Positions 3,554 through 57,420 of a DNA stretch of 64,000 bases are shown piece by piece. Positions within the stretch are counted from its first letter, which is position 1, and each line of letters starts with the position of its first letter. The DNA is from Trichosphaerium sp. ATCC 40318. Lineage: Eukaryota > Protista > Tubulinea. The translations under genes and the position numbers were made by a program. Where the stretch lies: the NCBI GenBank assembly GCA_038496445.1, contig JALMLS010000507.1:372001-436000 (forward strand), in the 5' to 3' direction. The notes below the pieces were generated by a model. It was not told where the DNA came from and did no database searches. It saw only the letters and a list, made by a program, of their open reading frames with translations.

Positions 3554-4293
3554 TCAGGATTCCCAATTGGGGTTCATCCAACCATCATTAACGCCTTCAC
3601 ATCTATGCACACTTTCTTTTTTTTCATAGATGTCTATATTCGAAACATATAAAGTATCCCTACCAAATTGAAGACAAGCATGCTTCAAGAAACCTAACCA
3701 AGATGGCCTAAACACAAAAAATTAGTGTTCCAAATTAAAAAAGTTTTGTTGTCATGACTGCCGAACAAACTTGTAACACACGTGCTCAAAATACCATTTT
3801 TAATAATAAAGTGAGAAGCAAAAACGTACTCAGGTGCTTCTTTTAATACTTCCTTGTCCTCTTTTACCATCTCAGACGCCTCATGTATTCTCTCAAACGC
3901 AGCTTTTTCATAAAAATCAAGTCTTGATAACCACACGTCAGGATATTTTAGAATGCAAAAAGCCACGTGATCTGGACAAAATCCACAAGCGTATATTTCA
4001 GTACCGCTAATAGCTGCCATTTGTTCTGTACTAAGTGGTGTTCCTTGCTCATAAAAATAGTCTTCACCAATTGACTGAAATATCACGTATTTTGAAAGTT
4101 TTGGACGCCAAATTCCTCGAAGAGAAACTAATATTTGGTTCCACTCTTTAGATGTCATTGTAGCCCTCAGTGCATCCTTAGCTGGTACATACTGGAATAT
4201 ATACTCTATTAGTTCATTTGGCAAGCGTTTAATGTTAAAAGACGCTAATTCACCATCTATCGCTTGCTGTTGTAGTACTTTAGTGGCACTCAT
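3554..4293 (-). CDS. F-box domain protein
   Basis: IKRLPNELIEYIFQYVPAKDALRATMTSKEWNQIL matches the F-box consensus. ATG at 4293; one intron, then an exon ending at TGA 3554. Confidence 0.7.
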
Positions 4294-4485
4294 GACAAAA
4301 AAAAAATTGTACAAACCTCCGTTGACTTTTTTTCCGCAAAATTTTGTACAGCCTAATAAAACACCACATTTCTGAATTGTAATGAAATCAACTTATGATA
4401 CCTCTAGCATTTGTAAAGTCAGAAAAACGTAGTGCATAGTGACATAAAACGTCTTCTGTAACTCGATGACCAGATTTTATTAAGT

Positions 4486-7400
4486 TTAGCTATAGGGATC
4501 ATCATCGTTTGTCAAGATAACATCTTTTTCCGTGTTCGTATTAAGTCTCTTTTTTACCTGAAGTGGTGATGGTCCAATAAAGCTTAATACAACAGGAAGA
4601 AGTACAAAACCAGTTAAAAGAGAAAGAAGACAAATAGATATCAACATGTTAAAGTAAATCTTAAAAGCAGGTGCAGATCCAAAATTTAGCATAACAATAC
4701 CCAGAAACGTTGAGAATGCACCACTCAACACAGACGTCCCCATTGATGTTAGAGTAGCCCTAACTCTCTCAATGCGTGTTCCTCGATGTTTCATAAAGGC
4801 ATGTCCGATATGAGCATTGTAGTCAACAGCAAGACCTAGGCAGTACTTTAGGCAAAAAAAAAACCAGGATGTATTTTGTAGGTATATGAGAAAGCTAAAA
4901 TACAAGCTTGAAACCTATATTATCTTGGTACAAGCCAATCATCAATAGATTAAAAGCGTAGTTCAGCGAAACTATACATGGACTTACCAATTGATAAGAT
5001 TAGACTCGCTATAGATAATACGTTGATTTCTATATTCCCTATTGTCATAACAGCTACTAACAGTGTGTCTACTATAGCAATACAACACATTATATAGAAT
5101 GCAATCAAAGGGTGAGGCATAAATATTAATGCAACAACAAATACAGCTCCTAAATTACAATGACCACAAGTTTGATGGTTTGTCGTACCTCCTGCAAACA
5201 GCATGTTTTTAACAGCCTCTGGAAGCATGATTTGTATACGCTCTAGAACACGGTACCACCTTCAGCAAAGTCAAAACACAATAAGCATAAACGAGCATCG
5301 ATTTTTAAGATTTTTCTGTGGCAAAAAAAGAAAAGAAACGGATTTGATTAAGGACGCCCAGAAAAAAAAAACCAAAGTAGTATACTTAATTGTACCAACT
5401 GTATGGGTAAGAAGGTATACTGGAGTATTTATCGCTAATAGCACGAAGTTCTTCCTTTTGCAAAGTGTTAACAAGTTGGCTAACAACAGAACGTCATTAA
5501 GAAGGATACCATGTTACGGATCTTTTCGTTTGATGGTATAATACCAATGTTCCAAAAGAGCGCTTTTGATGCTATAATAGTTCTGTTATCAGCCGAAAAA
5601 GCAACATCCCTATAAATTACATTAAAGCGGGAGTTGTGATCATTGAAGTGATAAGAACTTTGTTCTATTATACCTTCTGTAGTGTTCATGTTCTGGCGTT
5701 TGTAAAAACATATTTATATAAGCAGGAGTACCAATATCTGGTATTGTAGTATTGGGATACGTTTCATTATACCTACTTCAGAATTAGCACGTGATAATCA
5801 AAGTATCTCACCATTTTTGAAAATCAACCCACCAAAACTGCACATTCGGATCTAAACTATCAGTCAGTTTCTTACCCATGTTTTATAAAAATGACCGAGT
5901 ATTGACTTGAAAGCTGAGCTTATTATCTTACCTATCCATCCAGAATCTAAAACATCCTGTGTGACATTACTCATGAGTTGTATATTTTGGTTAGTATAAG
6001 AGAAATCTCTAAAAATCCAATCTACAGTGAATCCCATGCTATCAAAGTACTTTTCAACATCATAAAAGTCTTGTAAATAAGATCCAGACGGTACTAAATC
6101 CTCAAAAACAATACCATCCTTAACATTAGTAGCACCCCAAGCAGCAACGCCAATAAATGCAATAAAGAAAATAATCTAAGAAATAACTCAGAATAAATTA
6201 AGAATGAAGAATTCTAGCGTACAACACATATTCTCGTTACTGTATGGAGTATGAAAGGTGAGTATACATGGTAGAGAATCCATCTAACGATTCCACCACG
6301 CTTTAATGCATCAGCAAACTTTGCTGAGGCAACAATTTTTATATCTTCGTTTAAGTCGTATGTCAACTTATCAGCGAGTGGTTTACCATCATCAACAAGA
6401 AGATCACGTTCACTTGGTATATTTTCTATCCTATAAGCTGTCTTTGCTCTGATACATGGAACACAATCAACACGACGACCCTGAAGACAAAAAAACGTAA
6501 ACTTCAATGTCTTTTGGATAATCATTGAACGCGTACTCTTTCACGTCTAGAGTTGAGCACCATGCATGCTGTAAACCATATAACTTGATATACGTAATCT
6601 AGGAATACGCATACACCACAATAGAAGCAGAAATAACGAATACTTGCTATACTACTAAGACAACCAAAGAAAAAAGCTACAATGTCTGTCATCGATGTTA
6701 CAGTTATTGTACTTCCTGCCATGGCCAATGCAATACCTACTCTCTCATCAGGAGGTAGATTTGGTGATGTAGCTTCATATGAATTTACAATAATAAACAT
6801 ATCATCAACACCAACACCAAGAATAATAAACGGAATGACTTGAGCTACCTAATACAAACAAGTAAATCAAGTAGAATTTCTCGTCTTTTTTTGGCCTCCA
6901 CTCAACACGTACAACTGTGAACTTTATACCTATCATACAACAAAATCCATAAGAGAATATAATTGATAGAAGAATACCGAACATGCCACTCAGGGCGAGC
7001 AATACCTAGGTCATGTTATAACGTCTTTTTTACCTATTAACAACGAACATACCTTTGATTGTACTAAATCTCGTTCACCTAGAGCCAAAACAACGTATCC
7101 AACGACAAGTACATATGCAACAGCTATAGGTATTAAATCTTTTCCAATAGAAGTATTAACTTCATCTGATAATGAATCCTAAAACAGTTGATTAAATAAC
7201 GATAACTGACAAAGTGCAACTGACGTACCTTAACGAATGGAAACGAGTCAGTGAAATTCCGTTCTTGTAGTGCCACAGATACAAAGTCTCTCTCCCAGTC
7301 TTTTAATGTTCGAATAGGCTTTGGCCAGGTTGGTGGTAGTAAAGGGAAAGTACCGGTAGGTTCGTCAAAGTCCTCCAAATACCAGAACAACTGAATTGCT

Positions 7401-17579: not shown

Positions 17580-20500
17580 ATGGCGGCTTTAGCCAGTTCA
17601 AAAATGGTAAAGGGCTGCTTCTTATCTATCTTTTTTGTTGGAGCAGGACAAACTTTGCTCTTTTTTTTAAAGTCGTTATTTGTGTTCAAACGTTTTTTGC
17701 TCGAAGCAACCAACCAAAAATACACGAAACAAAAAACCGTCTCCAGTTGCTAATATTGCTTGTTTAGACTCTATTGTTTATCGCTACTACTATGATTTTG
17801 GCTAGCGTATACTGCGCTTCCCACGGAAGAGTTGGTATTTGTGATGCCAACTACCCTACCTGGGGATGCAGACCAGAAGACGTATGTTAACTCTAGAACC
17901 TTTTTAACTTTCGCTCCTTTTTTCCGCTAGTTTGGACAAAACAGTTTTTTTTTTCTCGCATCACGTGACGTGACTTTTTTCAACACGTGATAATACACCC
18001 GATTTTACTGAGTAATGATGTGACCTGACCCGGAAAATTAAAAAAACCGAGATCAACTTACATATTCACAAACAAAAAACCGTTTATCGATCCCATACTC
18101 ACTTACGTTTCTTTGTAGTGGCCTATTGTCGATGGTTCAGTAAACCGAAAAGGATGTACCGATCCAGATGCTGTTATGTCTTGGGCTAGCAGAACTGTTC
18201 GCACTGATGGTATTATACTGTTTGTTGGTGACGAATCATCTCCAGATGATTCATACCAACCAGGAAAAATCACGGACATAACCGTCAAAGTTGTTGACTA
18301 CAGATTGAAGGCAAGTCGTTTTTTCTTTCTCTACGCACAAATTCAAACTTAGTTTTTTCGCACTTTTTTTCCTAACGTTTTTGTGTAGTACCGTGGTCTT
18401 TTACTTTACGCAGAAGATGAAGATGGTAACCGCGTCGGTCGCTTCGCCATTTTACCTGAAAATCCTCGTAAGTAACTTCCCACTTCGAAGTTTTTCTTTC
18501 TAGTTTGGCTTTTCCTTTTGGTTTCAACTTCTTACTTTTTTCTAGAAATCTACCACGTCCCTTTCGGTTTTGGTGATCACCCTTGCGCACACGTTGTTAC
18601 TCACTTCAGCGCTGACCTCAAGCCTTTGGTTTCGACATTCAAGTTTGTCGCTCCTTTAGAAGGAACCGGAAAGATTACAATCCGTTGCCTCATCAAGGAA
18701 GGTGATGCCAATGTTGGCGCCTTTTTCTGGCCTAACTTGGGCGGAGATGTTGAACTCGAGGAATCAGATGTTGAGCTTCCAGAAAAGACTGTATACGAAT
18801 CACTTCCTGGACAATCCTGCACAGAGGCTTGCAATGATATCGGTGGAACTTGCAACAACCAACCTTCAACTGCTACCAACAACGATGCAAGAATCGATAC
18901 TCTCGTCGATACAAACAACTTGCTCTGCAACGCTCCTTTCATTGCTGGATGCTCAAACCTTGGATTATACAAGAAGGGAAGTCACTGCCTCTACCGCGAA
19001 GACACATGCAGCCAACAAGTCACTTGTGATACAAGAGAGCAAAACAGAGCTCGTCTTTGCACTTGTACTGGTGTACCAGGTTCAGCAAGCGCTCGCGCAG
19101 CACAAAGTCCAGCTTCTGTCAAATCCACAAGGTATGCACCAACTTCTTTTAGCCACTTGCTTCTTTTTACCTTATCGTATTTGTTGTTTTAACTCTCGAA
19201 ATAGCTTCGGTTTGTTATTCTCTATGCTTGCTATGGCTATGCTCTTTACTGGTAAAAGCAAAGCAACCGGATCAAGCGCTCTTCTTTTGATCACAGTTTT
19301 GTGCTTATCTACATTCTTCACTGGCGCTTTGGGTCACAATTGGTGTAACAGTAATGCTCGTGCTGTTCAAGAAGGAAGTACTATCGGTCCTTGCCCTCCA
19401 AGAACTGAAGATATCGCTCACGTACAAGTCGGTAACGGACAAGAGTTCGAGATTGAGTGGACTACCGGTCACCCTGGTAACATATTCTCTGACCAACGCG
19501 GAGAAACACCACATGCCTACTTCACAATCATCAAAGCTGAAGATGAAAGCAAACTCGGTCAATTGACATCAGAAATCCTCGACCAATACATTGAAAGCGC
19601 TCCTTCCAGCGCTATCATTCCAGGCGTCAAACAATGGCATCGTCAAATCGCTGGCGGTGACGGTATCAACGTAAGACCTGGTGATGATCCAGATGGTGTA
19701 TACACACGTGAGATCTTCGAAACTGATCCAGAGTGGATTCCACGTCCAGCAGAACCTTTCTGGGGAACAAAACGTTACACAATGAGAAACAAGAACAACA
19801 GAATGTTCGAATACAACCCTGATAAGATTGCCTCCACTATTGCCGTATCATACAGCGATCCTTCAATTCCGTTCGTTCTCGCTGTATACCGTTTCAAACT
19901 CGCTCTTGGATTGGGTCGCCCATTCGATGTTGATTTCGCAAACTTTAAGATTCCAGAAGGCAGCCCTGTTGGTCAGTATATTGTACAATATTACTGGAAA
20001 GGATACTGGGATTGCATTGATGTAGTATCTACTACAGCTCATGTAACAAACAAATACGGAACTATCCCAGTTGGACCACCACCAGCACCTACATTCAAGT
20101 ACGCCTTCTTTGACATGTTTTTTCTCGTTTTGTTTTTCTTGGAATGTAGTAGCATTTATTTATTTCTTCGTAGGCGTGTCGATCACTGCTTTACTCCAGA
20201 CTACCAAACCGTACACGGAGACTGCATGCTCGTTACCAACAATAACCCACAACCTTGTCTTGACATTTGCTCCGGTATCGAAAATTGTGACTACGTCGTT
20301 GTTGTTCCAACTAAGCAACCACCAAATTACGTCATCCCTGGTTACTACCCACCAAGCTGTAACGCTTTGCAATCAGCAAATGCTAATGACGACAACGCTC
20401 TATTGTGTTACGCAGTAACAGCCAGAGAACCAACAACAACTCTCCCTAAAGCCCTCACAACAACCGATCCAGATGATCCATATTTCTACTCAACATGTAT

Positions 20501-21210
20501 GATCAGAAAGAGTACTATCCAAACAGAAGTTCCACCTGTTGAAAACAACCCAGTCATTGCCGCTATTTACAGAGATAAATGTATCAGTTGCGACGATAGA
20601 CAAAGATTCACAGATTACTCAAAGGTATGGGCATGGAACACAGTAACACCTTGTCGCGAATGTGGAGTTAATATCTTCGATGGTGGTGATCAACCGGAAA
20701 TCCCAGACTACAGACCTCCACCTCCACCACCTCCACCAACTGTACCAACAACACTTCCACCTACTGCTGCTCCAACAACAGCTGCACCAACTGCTACACC
20801 ACCTCCAGTTGACGGTCAAGCTTGTCCAGTAGCTATGCTTGATGTTGATCGTACACAATGTAAGTTGATTGCACTTTTTTTTTTTTTCAAGCGATTGTTG
20901 AGTCAATATCCACTTACACTTTTAATTAGACATTGGAGAAGGTTTCAGTTATGAATTCATGAACACTTTCTTCGTCGCCAGATTCCCTACTGGTACTGGT
21001 AGAGTAGACTTTACTGCTACAGTTACTACTGCTAAAGGTCTGACTCCACAATACTGCTTCGCAGGTGGACCAGCCTCCGGCTCTGGCAATGTATTCCAAG
21101 TCACCCTATACCCTGGTAGCCGTCTTGTAGATGTACTCGGATGTGGATGGCAGGCTGTTGATCGCGATGTCACTGTTGTATTGACTGACTGCGTATACAG
21201 TGTATATTAG
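17580..21210 (+). CDS. Secreted/membrane polyprotein: signal peptide - Reeler-like domain - Cys-rich module - TM - internal signal peptide - His1 LPMO-like domain - Cys-rich module - Pro/Thr linker - C-terminal beta domain
   Basis: Exons join in one frame through introns at 17607-17767, ~17882-18118, 18311 (GC donor), ~18468-18545, 19132-19204, ~20099-20173 and ~20860-20929. Reeler-like YQPG...YRGLLLYAEDEDGNRVGRF...C..VVTH...FVAP..GTGKITIRC; ALG|HNW at 19335; EWTTGHPG; GQYIVQYYWKGYWDCIDV. C-ending codon bias resembles actin. Confidence 0.8.
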
Positions 21211-21599
21211 ATGAAAACTTTTTCGTTATTGAGAAATTCAAACGCCCACGGTTTTTATAATGTTTAACAAATAAACACCTTCATTCACTCAAAGCCTCAC
21301 ATTAAATGAATGCACTGTTATCCCTTTTCCTTAAAGAATTTATGGTCTAGTTACACCTACCGATTTCGCACAAAAGCTCTAGAATGCATCAGTGTCAAAC
21401 TTACCCACTTTGCGTTGTTTTTTGACAGCAAATGACATCGACTTTAAAAAATACAATTAATTGATGTCGGTTCATTTCTTTCTAAGTTGTGGTTACCATG
21501 TTAAAATTTTTGTAGCGGGCTGATCCGGGACCGGACCACCTAAAAGTTGTAGTGTCAAGGTAAAGGTCCGAACAGTTTTATTTATGTACAAATATTATC

Positions 21600-24500
21600 T
21601 TAATAGTTCTTGTTAAATGGACAATTTGATGCCCAGTGACCGCGCTTATTACAATAGAAACATTTTGTCTTAGGACATTTGCTAGTCTCATGACCAGTTT
21701 GATTACAATTTTTACATGAAAACCTAGACTTCTTTGATGGAGAACCAGTAAAGGATAAAAACATTGGTTTTCTTTTGTACAATGGGTTCTCAGGAAAATG
21801 ATCTTGATGCCACCTCCAAACCTTCTCATGTACAGTCATCTTACTATAGCTCATTAATAAGATTGGTCATGTGTTAATGATACGTTTTATGCGTACCTTC
21901 TTCTAAATCCCTTGAGGTACATGCCTTCTAAGTTCCTTGCTCTGCTCAGTGCAACATATGCTTGACCATCAGCAAAAGTACGTTCCAAGTCTATTTCGAC
22001 TCTGTCTAATGACATCCCTTGACATTTATGTATTGTAATAGCCCATGCTAATTTTAATGGTAGTTGTATCCTATAACATGTACCAACTTGCGGTATTCTA
22101 CTGCTCATAACGACTAACAAAGTGTTAGCATTTTTCTTAACAAAGAAAAAAATAAGAAAACTGTTTTGCAACTCTTACGAACTTTAGGTGTTACAGATAC
22201 TACAAAAAGATATTGTATGTAGTAATGTGATTATTTTAAACCTTATATATACTACGGGTGTACATAAAAAAGTTGTTGTGTACCTGGAATAATCGTTTTT
22301 TTGAAAGGATGATTTTCGTTTGCAAATTTTATAACAGGCAAAGGGTACTTCTTCTCTTTAAACAATAACAACCCTTTCATTTGCATTATAGTTATTTTAA
22401 TAAGTGTCCTTATCATGCTTGATCTATGTTTTGAACTAGTACCACCAACCTCAGTATTTTCTATTTCTTTGAGCTTTTCTCTAATTGATTCTGTTGGCTT
22501 TCCACTTCTCATCAGATGAGCCATTTGTGCCCTCAACTCATCGTATTTTTTCTTCAGTGATGGCATAACCTAACGCTCTCATCACGTGAGTGAAGAGTAG
22601 ATAAACTTTTGTTTAAAAAAAATCGTCAAAAGAATGTTGCGTACCAGTTTTTTTCTTAGATCAACAAATGCTCCATTGAGTCTGTCCTTGTGCTTATCAT
22701 AGTCTGTGTCCCAATCTACGATTACACCACGAGAACCGTTAACAAGTGTGCTAGTTATATTCTTTGTGAGCATAACCTGAGCACCTTTTTTAAGTTTTAT
22801 CTCTTGTTTCGCCAAGCACCTACATAAGAGATTATAACTCGTGACTGTTTGTAGAAAAAAAAAAAGAGGTAGAAAAAGAATTTAAATTAAGTGCTCTGTT
22901 GAGAGATACACGCATATAAACGAGGGTATTTAAACGTGTTATATGTGGGAGCAATATACACAAATATAATAGTCGTAGACAAGGCGAGAGATTGATGAAA
23001 TGAGAGGTGGGATAACGTACTGATTAAAAAATTTGTCGTGCAATAGGAACTTTCTTGCTTTCGCATCGAAATTCCTTTCTTTTATACTTGTAAATAAGGG
23101 CTTCACCTCGTCTTCAAGGTCTTCTGATTTATGAAACCATATGGCATATTTTTCTCTACAAACTTCAACGAAGTCCTCACTTGTAATAACTTTCTTCAGA
23201 AGAAAAAAAGTTAGTTGTATTTCAAGAACTAAAAAACCTTTAACAAGGACTTTCTCTTACCACCGGACTTGGCAACATATCTAACTCCTTCTTATTGAAA
23301 TCATCAACCACTCTATTCGTAGTGTAGAGACGTGTTGGCTTAATACCATCACCATCTCCGAGAGGTCTATTACAACGCAACAACATTTGTTCTGTTTGTT
23401 TTCTTATTGTTCCAACACGTAACTCATTAAGGCATCTCACAAATACCTCATCCTTCTGTCTGAACGCCTATGTAATATTCTTTAATACATTCATTAATTT
23501 GACTCTCGACATACTTTGGTAAGTTCAAAGTGATTGTTTCCAAACAATCTACGCCATGCGCTTGCCTATTTCAAAACGCTTAACCACGTGCTTGTTTTCT
23601 GTTATTCTTACTTCAAAGCAGTATTTATGTGTTTGCCAACCTGGTTCAGCTTCTAGTTGCTTCAATTGTACTCTATCCGCAACTGTGAACTTACTGAAAA
23701 CCGGAGGAAGTTGAAAGAAATCCTTCAAAATAATTAGCAGATCAATTGAAAAAACCCAGAAAGAGATCGTACCCCTGTTACAATTACTTGAAATGCATAC
23801 TTAGAATACGGTATGTGAATGTCCCCATTATTACCACGTAATTCCCAGGCTTTGTTTATAATGCCATCAAACCTGTAATGATATCATTAACAAACAACCG
23901 AAGAAACATTGGTGTACTTACAACTCACCAGAAATCATAGATATTTCGTCTATAATCAATACCCTCAACTCAAGCCATCTTTATAATGTGTTAGTATCAT
24001 GTATGTGTTGATAGTATGGTGGGTGAGAGTTACATACGTTTTATATTTACCATGCATTTTGTTTAAATCTAAAACAAATATCAAAACAAAGAAAAGTCTA
24101 CTGAAGCGACAGGCTACACTATTGTTGTATGACCTGATACGGAAAACAACACTTTCTAGAGCGCACAAGATATAATGGGATGTTTACCTTCGTCTAGTTT
24201 AACAACACCACATCCTGCAAATGAATGTAACGAAGTACCTTCCAAAGGAACGGAAGCAATGCCTTAGTAAGATGTTTAGTACTACATAAAAAGTTGATAA
24301 AAGTACCTGTAGACGCAGTCACTGCTACTTTGGTGTTAAAGTCTTCTTGACCATATTTAAGCTTTAACCCTTTAATAATCCTCCTAAGAAGAAACGACTT
24401 GCCAGTACCAGCACTACCCGTTATAAACGCAGACTGTTCTTTGTTTATGACGGCGTCATATATTTGTTGTTGTTCTTCACTTAGTGGCAGTTCTTTGATT

Positions 24501-28439: not shown

Positions 28440-30158
28440 ATGGCAGCAAAGCTTGTAGACGAGCTAATCACTGAAGGTGCTATTAAATTAAAAAAAGGCA
28501 AAATATTCGATGTGGCTCTGCAACCGTTTCCGGATTCATTCAATTACGATGGTACGCCACAATACGCGTCTAAATTTCTTTACGCGTGATTTATTTTTAT
28601 CTAACAACCCAAAGAATACGTTGAGGGCATGCTACTTTGCGTGGCAATTGGTGACGCTCTAGGATATCCCACAGAGTCTCATCTTCCTAAGTACTCAATC
28701 CCATCACTCCGAGCCTCGTCTAATGTACCCTTCACTACCTAGTTCGCGCTGGGAAACACATGGAGGAGATATAGTCGCATACAACTCAGGCAGGCAGAGA
28801 GACAAGAAAAAAGAAGAAGCCATTGGAGGCCCAAGTGACGTACTTGTTTGAGGCTGACTCTTTGGGTTATTTTTCTGACTCAGAGGTATTTTAGGATACA
28901 CAAATGACGTATTGGACGCTTGCTCAAATGATAGAAGACAAAGGTTGCTTGAACTTCGAGAATATTGCAAAGTGCTTCTTGCAATCTAAAATTTTTGGTA
29001 AGATTTCTTTGTTTTTTGCTTCTTCTTCGTTTTCCTGGCTTATTAACATGTTGAACTATTTAGGTATTGGTCAAGCTGTTAGAGAAGCTACCAGTAAACT
29101 TCGTTATGACACACACTGGACGCAGAGGTACGTACTTGAAAATAGAGATCAAACAAAACTCAGTTGGTTTTTTTTGAACAGTGGTGCCAAGTCAGCAGGA
29201 AACGGATCATTGATGCGTATGGCGCCTGTCATACTTCCTAACCTTAAAGTTGGAGGATCGCAAATTTGGAGTGATGTTGTACTATTGGGTCTTGTGCGTC
29301 TACCTTTAAGTTTGCCTTTCCTTGAAACTGATTTTAACACTTTAGATGACACATAACGATCCAGTATCTATGGCTTCTTGTATTGCATTTGTCTATATGG
29401 CGTGGCAAGCGCTTTCCATGGAATCACCACCACCACCTAACTGGTATGCACAACATTATAAACAAGGGCAGCTTATTAATGAAGGCAGGTATTTGGAAAC
29501 TTTTTTAAAAGTTGCTGAAGATCTTGAGCCACAAGACAGTTCATACAAACCACGTGGTGGTAAATGGACATCCTACAGGTATGGATTTTTTTCTATCAAT
29601 TTAAATTACTCACGTGATGGAAGTGGTACTTTATGTGGGTATGTAAAGCTGGTAATAGCTGAAGCTTGCAAGCAAAATTGGGATACAAGACAAGCATGTA
29701 ACAACTGGTTTTCTGGAGCATACTTGGTAATGGTCGCTCACTGGCTGTGTTTACTAACTAATTATTGTAGTTGGAAACAGTACCTTGTGTTTTATACATC
29801 CTCATGAAGCATGGCTCTGATTTAAAGACAGCTATCATTCGCTCTGTGAATGATACAAAAGGTAATTGCACTTTTCTTGGTTACCCTGTGAATGTTGTGA
29901 AAATACTAATGTAGCTTTTTTATAGATAACGACACAGTTGCAGCTATTGTTGGTATGGTACTGGGTACGCTCATTTAGCTTTCTCAACAAAAATATAGTA
30001 TATTGTAATGATTAATTGATTGGGTAGGTGCTCTACATGGTAAAAGTAAAATTCCAGAACTGTGGATAAATAATCTCTCCGGAAGAACATTGAAAGCAGA
30101 TAATGGGAAAGTATTCTCCTTGCTTGAAGCCGCAAAGCAGATCTACTGGAAAAAATAA
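28440..30158 (+). CDS. ADP-ribosylglycohydrolase (ARH/DraG family), multi-exon
   Basis: VEGMLLCVAIGDALG, PSDDTQM, SAGNGSLMRMAP, THND and NDTKDNDTVAAIVGMVLGALHG (Mg-binding motifs). Confidence 0.9.
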
Positions 30159-38271: not shown

Positions 38272-39745
<1,474 letters not shown>

Positions 39746-51588: not shown

Positions 51589-52996
51589 ATGCTTCAATCT
51601 TCAGGGTAAGCCTTGTGCTCCATAAATTAACTTGCTTTGCCGCTCAATTAAACGAACTCTATAAGTACTACTACCCGCGCTCATAGTTTACGTAGGCCAT
51701 TAGAATTGCTTGACATGCCAACAGAAATTATAGTTTGTATTCTGGCGTCATTGGGCAAGAAAAGCCGTATATCTGCAATGGTTGTTTGTAAACTCTTTTC
51801 TGCCATCATTTTAAATCACTTGGGGTTTTTGAAGGTGACTGTCAAGTCAAGAGACGATATTTTAAAACTAAATGGAAGTCCCCTTTTACAAAATACTGAA
51901 GTAATTATTAACTGTGTTACACTAACCGAGGATGACTTTAAAAATATCTCTGGAGTCCGTCACCTTAAAATAAATGATGTAATGTCATTAACAGATGCAA
52001 TGTTAGAACATATCAGGAGTACGTCGCCTTGCACTACATATAGATATCAGATCAAAATATTTTACTGGATTTAAATCACTTAATGGCATTCATACCCTAG
52101 ATATATCAAATGGATATTTAAAAGATGAATGGCTCCAACAACTTGGTGGTATTCACACCATTGATATTTCAAACACAGATGTAACAGATAAGGGACTTGC
52201 GGCACTCTCTGGAGTTCACACTATTAACATATCAGAGTGTTTCGGAATCACAGACAAAGGTGTTATTGCCATTTCTCATAAGGTACAGAAGATACAGCTT
52301 GACATATGTAATATTACAGATAAAACTGTGAAAGCACTTATAAATGCAAGTGAAATATCTTTTAGCAACTGTTACAATATTACAGATGAAGGAGTAACGT
52401 ACCTGTTGACACAAAATCAAACAACAAAAAAGATAACCAAAATCATACTTGATGGCTGCACGCAAATCTCAAATGAAACACTAAAACTATTGGCTGGTAT
52501 ACCTTGTATAGAACTTAATAATTGTACACAATTGAAAGATGACACTTTATCATGCTTAGCAGGTGTATATCATATTGACTTGAGTGGTTGTAGATCAGTA
52601 ACAAATGACGGGATAAAACAATTGGCAGGTGTAAAACTGATTAATATTTCTGGGCTTGATTGTGTTGATGATAGTACTTTAAAGGCACTTGCTGGAGTAC
52701 ATGCCATTATTCTCAATAGTACATCTGTGACAGATAAAGGTTTGCAATATTTGGTTGGTGTTAAAGTAATAAGCCTTTGTTTTTGTCGTAACATAACAGA
52801 CAAAGGAGTGAGCAGTCTTGTTGGTGTTAAGAAAATATCTTTAAAATCCTGTGAACAAATCACTGATGACGGTGTCAGAAATTTAACAAGCCTTGTAGAA
52901 ATTTGTTATTTTAGAACTAAAATTACAAAGAAACTGGTTGATTGTCTAGGGTGCAAAATAATGCGCTACTATTGGCATGATATGATGTTTGTTTGA
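51589..52996 (+). CDS. F-box protein with ~22-aa leucine-rich repeats
   Basis: LLDMPTEIIVCILASL...AMVVCKLF (F-box); repeats of L.GV..I.LS.C..ITD.G. Confidence 0.8.
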
Positions 52997-55464: not shown

Positions 55465-57420
55465 TTACACAGAGTCCGAGAACGAGCTCTCCGTGCTTTT
55501 CCCAGAGTAGCTGTTATCTTTAGAATTAATCAAGGGTTTATTTTCCTAAAACAGTAAATTAACAACTAGTACTAGACAATACAAACAAAAGCTCACCTGT
55601 CGCTTGCCCAACTCTTTCTCTGTTGGTTTGATAAAAAGCAATAGCAAAAACGCAATAAAAAAAGATGCACCAGCCATAGCTCCAGCTACTTTGTAACTAC
55701 CAAACGCATCGTATATGGCTCCAGCAGCAGGTACACCAGCTGCCATTGATAGCCAACCAAACCACAATGTACCAAGAATCACAGAAAAGTTCTCTAAATT
55801 ATTGCTTTAGTACGAGATGAAAGCAAAAAAAAAAATAAATAGAGTACCTGTTCCGAAGACCTCTGCAACAAATGGCGAAAAGTTTCCTATTATTGAACCA
55901 GATGATACGCCATAAGCTACACCATAAGCCATAAGTAATGGGAAACTATCAAGCCAAGGCCAAGCAGTAGTAATGACAGTCATGAACAATAAAGCCAACT
56001 GAATAATAATTCTCTGTCCGACGAAATCAGATATGAAACCAAAGATTAACCTTCCACCAGCAGAAGCAGCACCAATAACTGAAAGAAGGAGAGAAGATTG
56101 TAGAGTAGTAAACCCTTTATCTTCACCATCAGCAATGATATGAGAGAATGGTATAAGGTATCCGTATGCCATGAATAGCACAATAAGAAAAAGTATTATA
56201 AATTGTGAGTTTGTAAAGTATTCAATATTAAAAACTTTCTTGCTTTGTTTGATTGTAACCCTCTTGCGATAAAAAAAAATCAAAGGTAGATTCAACGCGA
56301 GAATACCCGACATTACTTTTAAAGAGTTCTTCCAGCCCATTATACCCTCCAAATACGTAAAAAGAGCTGGATATACAAAAGTACCAACGCCAATACCTGA
56401 ACAAACATAAGAAGAGTAAAAGACTTTAGAAAGACTGCTAGAAACGCCACTTCAAAAAAAATCACAAAACAGATACAAAACTATTTCGGCTTGAAAAGAA
56501 AAAAGTTCCTTGCGAATTATTACGAGTGTGAAATGACTGATAAGTACTTTTTGTCGGTTTTGCCGACAAGAAAAACTGTTCTTATTTTTCTAAAAATACA
56601 ACACACGTGTACGCGCGAGGTGGGTTTTTTTCGTGAATGTCAGAGCTCGCTTTTCTAATAACTCCATGTGTTGTGAAGTGGTTTTGTTTCATATTTTTTT
56701 TTGTGTTTGTGGGTTACGTACCTGCGTTGGCTAAACCAAATGCTAGTCCGGCGTATTTCTCAAACCACATGGCTAGTAATGCATTACCAAGTATTGTACA
56801 GCAAGAACCAAGTCCCATCACAAAACCGTATGTAAATACAAACCAAGCAAATGAAGGAGCATATCCACTAGCGAATAGACCAACTGTTGCAATAGCTGAC
56901 GCTATACCCGTCATAAGAGGGTACCCGAACTTTTCTGCACAATAACCAAAGCCACTCATCACTGTATACGTCTAGCAACTCATTAATTGCGTCTTCGTAT
57001 CATACTACAAAAAAAAATCGCGTTCATGTAATGCGGAGGTGCGCAAGTAGTGACACTTTGAGTTGAGTTGAAAGGGCGATAGTTTGAATTACTTACTGTG
57101 ATTGTGTAGATTGTACTAGCCAATGATGCTTCTCCTCTTTCGATATTATATTCTTCTAGTTTTGTAGTTAGTACAAGTGCTTGTTACGCTGACGAACCTG
57201 TGAGGTTAGTTATAAGAGCGCCAAAGAGAAAGCTTACACCATAAACCGAGAAAAATAGATAAAAACAAACAGCAAGTACTACAAATGCATATCCCTTGTC
57301 TGGTGGAGGTGGTGTTGGGTCGTTAGCGAATAAATCTTCGGTTTCAAACTCTAGGCGCTCAGTTGTTGTGAGAGCTACTTCCTCAGAAAACCTCTTTATA
57401 TCACGTTCCTTTGCGTCCAT
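55465..57420 (-). CDS. MFS transporter, monocarboxylate porter (SLC16/MCT)-like
   Basis: PPPDKGYAFVV, TYGFVMGLG, WFEKYAGLAFGLANAG, GRLIFGFISD, GAIYDAFGSY; 12-TM pattern. Confidence 0.88.

Follow-up and report, generated by a model that had tools for sequence, protein, structure and literature searches.

Proteins with a histidine brace, among them the lytic polysaccharide monooxygenases (LPMOs), need a free N-terminal histidine and are assumed to sit right behind an N-terminal signal peptide; a gene model that shows a His-first domain internally is generally put down to faulty annotation. The mitochondrial processing peptidase splits the product of the single fungal open reading frame (ORF) ARG5,6 at a targeting signal inside it, and the two resulting proteins cooperate. 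In the envelope polyproteins of flaviviruses, hepaciviruses, pestiviruses, alphaviruses and bunyaviruses, a membrane anchor is joined by a short loop on the cytosolic side to an internal signal that ends in a (-3,-1) site, and two luminal proteins arise at a fixed ratio; for cutting by the host signal peptidase, bunyavirus examples are given in PMC7926653 and PMC4974537. Here we describe a gene with the same apparent arrangement from Trichosphaerium sp. ATCC 40318, encoded in a 64,000-nt stretch of contig JALMLS010000507.1 (assembly GCA_038496445.1, positions 372,001 to 436,000 of the forward strand), which we call the window and in whose numbering positions are given. On balance, we favour a reading in which a fused precursor is cut by the signal peptidase of the endoplasmic reticulum (ER) into an anchored Reeler protein and a His-first metal-binding protein.

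Compared with the viral polyproteins, the window's gene belongs to a cellular protist family, the His domain of which also exists as a stand-alone secreted protein, and the cut is proposed to serve chemistry, by freeing an N-terminal histidine, beyond mere separation of two products. Like ARG5,6, it would be one ORF cut by an organelle's own presequence peptidase into two proteins, but the compartment and the peptidase are different, and the cut in ARG5,6 is not needed for a catalytic N-terminal residue. The likeness to histidine-brace proteins (LPMO families AA9-AA17, X325/Bim1, CopC/YcnI and PmoB) lies, at the sequence level and given the predicted cut, in an invariant His that comes first in the mature protein, a second invariant His, a near-invariant Tyr in the last beta-strand of a beta-sandwich and a predicted disulfide that ties the N-terminal arm to this strand. 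Unlike those proteins, the window's family has no Pfam, PDB-sequence or Foldseek relationship to them, places its second His just 45 residues after the first and keeps N2, W3 and R9 (counted from the first His) highly conserved. About two thirds of the family's representatives carry the domain mid-ORF, whereas we found no paper describing a mid-ORF LPMO. Our literature searches also returned no paper combining cellular polyproteins with signal peptidase, no relevant paper tying LPMOs or the histidine brace to Reeler domains, internal signal peptides or Amoebozoa, and none describing the His-first family. There is strong comparative evidence that this family may join the processing logic of envelope polyproteins to the chemistry of histidine-brace proteins, with cleavage and metal binding as the two proposals.

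The fused gene and its internal hairpin

The gene lies on the plus strand at 17580-21210 in AT-rich, intron-bearing eukaryotic DNA (about 38% GC for the window), in which the introns of genes measure 70-80 nt. Assembly and translation of its exons gave 8 exons, 2859 nt and 952 codons with 0 internal stops. Six introns are GT-AG and one is GC-AG, with the GC donor after exon 3 (18310), and five of the seven are 70-78 nt long. The parts on which the argument turns are the following:

17580-17606, 17768-17881, 18119-18310, 18389-18467, 18546-19131, 19205-20098, 20174-20859 and 20930-21210, plus strand: exons 1 to 8
19132-19204, plus strand: intron 5, 73 nt, phase 2, GTATGC...TTAAC...AATAG, dividing the Ser333 codon as AG|C
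19206-19247, plus strand: hydrophobic segment 1, FGLLFSMLAMAMLF, 14 residues, the proposed stop-transfer anchor of the upstream half
19248-19277, plus strand: loop TGKSKATGSS with a net charge of +2, which would lie in the cytosol and correspond to the n-region of the internal signal peptide
19278-19334, plus strand: predicted internal signal peptide, with h-region ALLLITVLCLSTFF (19278-19319, 14 residues) and c-region TGALG (19320-19334), Ala at -3 and Gly at -1
Between 19334 and 19335, plus strand: predicted signal-peptidase cut, Gly376|His377
19335-20081, plus strand: His-first domain, residues 377-625, of an undescribed family
19335-19337 (His1), 19359-19361 (Arg9), 19392-19394 (Cys20), 19470-19472 (His46), 20004-20006 (Tyr224) and 20013-20015 (Cys227), plus strand: key residues of this domain

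Across the exon 5/6 junction the protein reads ...SPASVKST-S-FGLLFSMLAMAMLF-TGKSKATGSS-ALLLITVLCLSTFF-TGALG|HNWCNSNAR, with the His377 codon at 19335-19337. The length of intron 5 is in line with that of four other introns of the gene (70-78 nt). The spliced N-half aligned to the family representative P0004 with an E of 3e-51, and the alignment to P0001 continues through the exon 5/6 junction into the hairpin. Collinear homology crosses every junction, including exon 5/6, which supports this splice. No poly(A) signal (AATAAA or ATTAAA) was found at the junction (19101-19260), and one AATAAA stands at 21270, 3' of the final stop (21208-21210). The effective number of codons (ENC) is identical in both halves (42.5 and 42.5). 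The Reeler half and the His half are very likely one fused gene. The codon bias, described in the earlier note as actin-like and as a sign of high expression, is there in intermediate form only (ENC 42.9 for the whole gene, compared with 35.8 for actin and 44-57 for the other ORFs of the window), which leaves high expression as speculation.

Fused ORFs recur in other organisms. A word-based search with the in-frame stretch 19206-20859 found P0001 and P0002. The first is a 933-aa ORF that nearly fills a 3.1-kb JGI contig with short flanks resembling untranslated regions, and it has the window's order of parts: Reeler, Cys-rich module and GLLAILLIFPFLF-SANPR-LAFALFLIFSVASA|HNW. Complete fused ORFs are present on Trinity or MMETSP transcripts of Cavostelium apophysatum (P0008), Rhizamoeba saxonica (P0024), Flabellula baltica (P0034), Lapot gusevi (P0012) and 'Euplotes focardii' (P0006, from MMETSP). 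Others occupy mRNA-sized contigs that hold little else (L001, L003, L004 and L011); in L003 and L004 one ORF fills the contig, with flanks of 12-106 nt.

With the mature His domain (19335-20098) as the query, an exhaustive representative search returned 308 representatives with E<=1e-3, of which 159 reached E<=1e-10. The nearest relatives are about 35-40% identical to the window's His domain. Named members come from amoebozoan, rhizarian and MMETSP transcriptomes, and most others from JGI, Tara-type or Logan assemblies. Among the 150 best representatives, the domain is internal (beyond residue 100) in 80 and N-terminal (position 60 or earlier) in 46. The N-terminal class has genuine members: P0050, which stands for a 60-member cluster including Phyllostaurus siculus, reads MLKFIVLALFANVKA|HNW, and 24 codons before its Met the frame is closed by a stop. 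Internal and N-terminal members are interleaved in a maximum-likelihood tree of 88 domains; parsimony counts 18 changes between the classes, and well-supported branches force at least 9 of them. The classes being intermixed, internal and N-terminal contexts are interchangeable for the His domain; that it should work equally well behind either kind of signal peptide is what would be expected if both yield the same mature N-terminus. No family protein strings more than one His domain together, the four additional 'HNW-like' motifs being chance occurrences, and the window holds no paralog of the gene.

The hairpin and the predicted cleavage site are shared throughout the internal class. His stands at +1 in 80 of 80 internal-type representatives, and in all 80 the residue at -1 is A, G or S and that at -3 is A, V, T, S, C or G. 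Two hydrophobic segments lie no more than 70 residues upstream of the His in 66 of the 80; by a sliding-window measure, the loop between them has a median length of 4 residues, contains K or R in 48 of 66 cases and carries a mean net charge of +1.1. The h-region has a median length of 15 residues both in this class and in the 46 N-terminal-type members, 45 of which also have His at +1 with a canonical -3/-1 site. Judged by its recurrence in 80 of 80 internal-type representatives that are less than 50% identical to each other, the pattern is far beyond what chance would be expected to give. Moreover, 25 of 79 internal-type homologs have no Met between -50 and -11, so that independent translation of their second half is impossible.

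These results agree with much of what the earlier note had proposed. The phase-2 intron at 19132-19204 that it placed between the halves is borne out by the eight-exon model, by the peptide, which reads as it had been quoted, and by collinear homology. The stop-transfer-like helix, short basic loop and signal-like helix ending in a (-3,-1) A-x-G site directly before His are found as ALG|H in the window and have their counterparts in the family statistics, and the conservation of this spacer in other protists, for which a homolog search had been suggested, is seen in the two-segment hairpin (66/80) and in the rule for His, -1 and -3 (80/80). Its claim of a single gene giving one precursor holds up in the gene model, the collinear homology and the fused transcripts of other species, and its claim that the His must become a free N-terminus fits with the same His following an ordinary N-terminal signal peptide in other family members.

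Based on these findings, we propose the following model. The N-terminal signal peptide would bring the Reeler-like and Cys-rich half into the ER lumen, where hydrophobic segment 1 would halt transfer and leave the KSK loop in the cytosol. Hydrophobic segment 2 would then restart translocation as an internal signal peptide, and ER signal peptidase would cleave after Ala-Leu-Gly376; from the sequence, cleavage at Gly376|His377 is likely. The products would arise at 1:1, a Reeler/Cys-rich ectodomain anchored via the hairpin and a soluble protein that starts at His377. In this soluble protein, the His-first domain would be followed by a Cys-rich domain, which is possibly PAN-like, then by a Pro/Thr linker and finally by a small domain at the C-terminus. 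The amino group and imidazole of His1, together with the invariant His46, would form a histidine-brace-type metal (probably copper) site, and a Cys20-Cys227 disulfide would pin this site beside Tyr224. The hairpin itself may be the fossil of a gene fusion, in which the C-terminal anchor (or glycosylphosphatidylinositol (GPI) signal) of an upstream gene met the signal peptide of a downstream gene, and it may have been retained because the His must be N-terminal. The Ser/Ala-rich linker and the 14-residue hydrophobic run would be compatible with a GPI signal, although segment 1 would have to become C-terminal through later processing. After the cut, what is left of the signal may be removed, for instance by signal peptide peptidase, or a GPI anchor may take the place of segment 1.

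Several observations weigh against this model. Both hydrophobic segments are short, 14 residues each, which makes it uncertain that segment 1 stops transfer. Neither the spliced junction nor an exon-6 stretch had an exact match in the JGI metagenome and metatranscriptome contigs that were scanned. The lack of any profile or fold match (see below) leaves the proposed metal binding unsupported from that side. The window's copy is a divergent, long-branch member (branch length 1.18) and has Thr at 168, where 85 of 88 sequences have Asp, and Ala at 170, where 69 of 88 have Arg (19836-19844); its function may not be that of most family members. Finally, the N-terminal class is smaller than counted because some of its entries are mis-called starts of fused ORFs: P0049 (contig L011) is really a 1144-aa fused ORF, the start of P0002 (contig L002) is mis-called too, and P0014 (contig L005) is ambiguous.

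On L002, a GC-rich ENA genomic contig, the Reeler/Cys-rich half and the His half adjoin on the same strand in different frames (4812-6100 of that contig). P0002 had been called from MAVGAQA|HNW, the cause being either an intron near the place of the window's intron 5 or an assembly frameshift.

For the family as a whole, the internal position is the majority state of the His-first domain, and a conserved device that goes with it would leave His at the N-terminus all the same. Should cleavage take place as proposed, the family would be a clear, family-wide cellular example of the signal-peptidase polyprotein strategy of enveloped RNA viruses, would define a new candidate metal-binding or oxidative domain family and would provide a testable link of Reeler, DOMON and cupredoxin modules to the proposed metal centre. 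In annotation, such ORFs should be kept unsplit and internal His-first domains retained.

The His-first domain and its putative metal site

Four residues of the His-first domain, H1, R9, H46 and G213, are invariant in 88 sequences. N2, W3 and Y224 are conserved in at least 95%, with Y224 present in 84 of 88 (3 others have Phe), and conservation of at least 90% extends over N2, W3, P19, Y85, D168, Y173, D200, Y215, W221, G223, Y224, D226 and D229. Cys20 and Cys227 covary: 74 of the 88 sequences have both, 13 have neither and 1 has a single one. We read this pattern as the signature of a disulfide that would fasten the N-terminal arm to a point of the last strand lying three residues away from Tyr224. 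An AlphaFold model on the family alignment is a beta-sandwich with a predicted local distance difference test (pLDDT) of 87.5 and a predicted template modelling score (pTM) of 0.89. The motif G-Y-x-D-C-x-D-V may resemble the F/Y-x-x-C-x-D/N-V/L motif of AA10 and AA9.

The earlier note had called the domain a copper enzyme of the LPMO kind, a label that the searches did not bear out. Neither the window's domain nor the 88 members matched Pfam at E<=1. A profile search of PDB sequences at E<=10 returned no LPMO, its sole match being a chance one to HopA1 (E 0.75). In a Foldseek search of the model against the PDB, the best E was 1e-2 and the matches were generic beta-sandwich or Ig-like folds, none of them significant; the LPMOs in the list were AA9 5ufv at rank 22 (template modelling score (TM) 0.28), AA10 9i1u at rank 24 (TM 0.17) and AA9 8b7p at rank 43 (TM 0.24). 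Foldseek against BFVD gave nothing. On these grounds, namely no Pfam or PDB-sequence match and a TM below 0.3 for the LPMOs in the Foldseek list, we did not assign the domain to an LPMO family. Conservation makes a histidine-brace-type metal site a reasonable inference: H1 and H46 are invariant, Y224 is near-invariant and Cys20 and Cys227 covary. We rate the chance that the N-terminal His takes part in a metal site as even or slightly better, whereas an oxidative enzyme acting on a polymer seems doubtful.

Downstream of the His domain, the released half would contain three further parts:

20175-20672, plus strand: Cys-rich domain of exon 7, residues 632-797, about 165 residues, after intron 20099-20173
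20712-20816, plus strand: Pro/Thr-rich linker
To 21210 (stop 21208-21210), plus strand: lineage-specific C-terminal domain of about 105 residues and unassigned kind, after intron 20860-20929

The exon-7 domain is present in 72 of 151 family proteins, in both classes, and has 11 invariant columns that include 8 Cys. Its model (pLDDT 83) has as top Foldseek matches the PAN/apple lectins, with SML-2 at a non-significant E of 0.5 and TM of 0.26, and 2 of 27 exon-7 domains gave a weak match to Pfam PAN_4 (E 0.017). For the exon-8 domain there was no match in Pfam or among family members. The window's protein has no hydrophobic C-terminal tail, and such a tail occurs in just 3 of 129 family proteins, so that the released half is mostly soluble in the family. 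A few long relatives (P0062, P0097) end in a WW domain; in these, the second half is probably itself membrane-bound.

The His-first domain may also have a function other than oxidation. It could be a metal-binding or adhesive beta-sandwich, serving copper uptake or sequestration as in X325/Bim1 and CopC/YcnI, or it could have a role without metal that needs the HNW...R N-terminus. This is possible but rather unlikely in our judgement. The domain has no fold or profile link to any LPMO family, its N2, W3 and R9 are as conserved as H1, unlike in LPMOs, and the additional conserved residues His29, His102 and Asp168/200/226/229 suggest a more elaborate site. On the other side, the attached Cys-rich domain, for which there are weak hints of a PAN/apple-like nature, would fit a carbohydrate-directed enzyme.

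The upstream half and the role of the pair

The upstream half consists of the following parts:

17580-17821, plus strand: start codon and N-terminal signal peptide, over exon 1, intron 17607-17767 and the first part of exon 2; residues 1-26/27, MAALASSKM TLLFIATTMILASVYCA(S)
18173-18745, plus strand: Reeler-like beta-sandwich domain, about residues 66-204, exons 3-5, interrupted by introns 18311-18388 (GC-AG) and 18468-18545
18809-19072, plus strand: Cys-rich module, residues 226-313, with 10 Cys and an invariant C-x-C at its end; its Cys columns are invariant or near-invariant among the upstream halves of the family
19070-19131, plus strand: Ser/Ala-rich linker that follows the Cys-rich module

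The N-terminal signal peptide has a hydrophobic core score of 2.48, and a Met followed by a hydrophobic stretch is also found at the start of 41 of 79 internal-type homologs. At 17816-17830 this signal peptide may end ...VYC-A-S|H-G, so that the upstream half might begin with His as well; this start is not kept in P0001 (MKVAIFACLSIWIALTCA|TSD) and is probably due to chance.

We compared the exon pieces of the window with a profile of 56 upstream halves from the family (A2). In hhalign, they matched A2 with 99.9% probability (E 5e-38), and a second piece did so with 97% (E 1.5e-11). Pfam Reeler (PF02014) is matched above cut-off by 23 of the 56 A2 members (best E 4e-11). A Pfam scan of each single exon piece of the window's gene gave no match anywhere, and for the Reeler domain this is because two introns split it. 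The data support a Reeler-type upstream half in the window's protein, its link to PF02014 being indirect, via A2. In 5 homologs the Cys-rich module bears a weak likeness, below threshold, to the C-terminal portion of Pfam Glyco_transf_18. A search for stand-alone Reeler/Cys-rich proteins (107-340 aa) found none; a fusion of two still-existing separate genes therefore has no direct support from the upstream side.

Some relatives carry more than a Reeler domain upstream. A Reeler domain is followed by DOMON in P0003 (residues 339-436) and P0032 (residues 512-558), and a plastocyanin/azurin-type copper domain is present in the upstream halves of P0082 (residues 366-441; 32.6 bits compared with a cut-off of 21.2) and P0094 (residues 13-39). 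This is reminiscent of the CYBDOM proteins (SDR2/FRRS1 and Drosophila CG8399; Reeler-DOMON-cytochrome b561), in which Reeler is likewise the N-terminal extracellular module of a membrane protein. In contrast to CYBDOM, the window's protein gave no match to DOMON or cytochrome b561 in the Pfam scan of its exon pieces, and its membrane part, a two-helix hairpin, leads on to another ectodomain. The role of Reeler in CYBDOM proteins is described as unknown (PMC10691727).

The two products may be cut as proposed and then act as a redox couple, in which the anchored half supplies electrons or metal or holds the His-first protein at the cell surface in a non-covalent heterodimer. The DOMON and cupredoxin-like domains of the relatives speak for such a couple, as does the fact that SDR2 and CG8399, CYBDOM proteins of electron transfer, begin with a Reeler module (PMC10691727), and 1:1 synthesis with an anchorless released half would fit a heterodimer like the viral glycoprotein pairs. 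On the other hand, just 4 of 56 upstream halves have a recognisable redox domain, the window's own is not among them and no cofactor-binding motif was identified in it, and we regard the couple as possible without expecting it. A different role could be expected from insects, whose Reeler proteins have been reported to bind microbes. The 'recognise-and-attack' function put forward in the earlier note is speculation, and a role of the upstream half as a redox partner or tether would be at least as plausible. A wider proposal, which we advance tentatively as falling short of probable, is that the family represents a new histidine-brace copper class, with the enzyme mostly being the downstream half of a cellular polyprotein behind a membrane-anchored partner (Reeler, in some cases with DOMON or a cupredoxin). 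Signal peptidase, cutting at the internal signal peptide, would free and activate the enzyme by giving it its catalytic N-terminal His, at 1:1 with this electron-donating or targeting partner.

Alternative products and the surroundings of the gene

An uncut precursor would span the membrane twice and expose both the Reeler half and the His domain outside the cell, and the His would act via its side chain only. Two hydrophobic segments with a positive loop also fit an uncleaved helical hairpin, but an uncleaved anchor gives no reason for small residues at -1 and -3 in 80 of 80 diverged sequences, nor for an h-region as short as that of true N-terminal signal peptides (median 15 in both). Moreover, the same His is found at +1 of an authentic N-terminal signal peptide elsewhere in the family, and the two contexts swap repeatedly on the tree. 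We consider an uncut precursor improbable and retain cleavage by signal peptidase as the preferred reading.

If intron 5 were retained, the frame would stop at 19190-19192 after 20 extra residues with a hydrophobic tail ...HLLLFTLSYLLF, a possible alternative anchored product, although T-rich introns yield such Phe/Leu-rich peptides by chance. That there are two messages, one for a Reeler half with this ending and one for a His protein from an internal ATG at 19224, 19233 or 19239 with the ordinary N-terminal signal peptide MLAMAMLFTGKSKATGSS...ALG|H, is very improbable: both products would resemble normal proteins and three in-frame ATGs do lie within segment 1, but the splice sites are canonical and the intron length is typical of the gene, a poly(A) signal is lacking at the junction and present after the final stop, codon bias does not differ between the halves, complete fused ORFs are carried on transcripts of at least 5 other species, and 25 of 79 homologs lack the Met.

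An actin gene exon at 38272-38985 on the minus strand (236 aa) is 94-97% identical to animal and Dictyostelium actins, which is too strong a conservation to be taxonomically informative, and has the strongest codon bias of the window (ENC 35.8, 40% C at third positions). An F-box exon (3694-4314, minus strand), a leucine-rich-repeat (LRR_6) exon (52328-52996, plus strand) and a major-facilitator transporter exon (55807-56352, minus strand) are unremarkable neighbours without evident connection to the gene described here. ADP-ribosylglycohydrolase is matched at 28904-29807 on the plus strand by two adjoining ORFs that differ in frame (profile positions 58-134 and 153-218); a short intron or a frameshift probably divides what is a single gene. 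Directly downstream of the gene, short ORFs at 21600-22566 on the minus strand have the look of debris from a mobile element, Helitron-like or other: one feature is a CCHC zinc knuckle (E 6.5e-8 to Pfam zf-CCHC), and another is a PIF1/UvrD-type helicase, of which the C-terminal part is present (E 9e-7).

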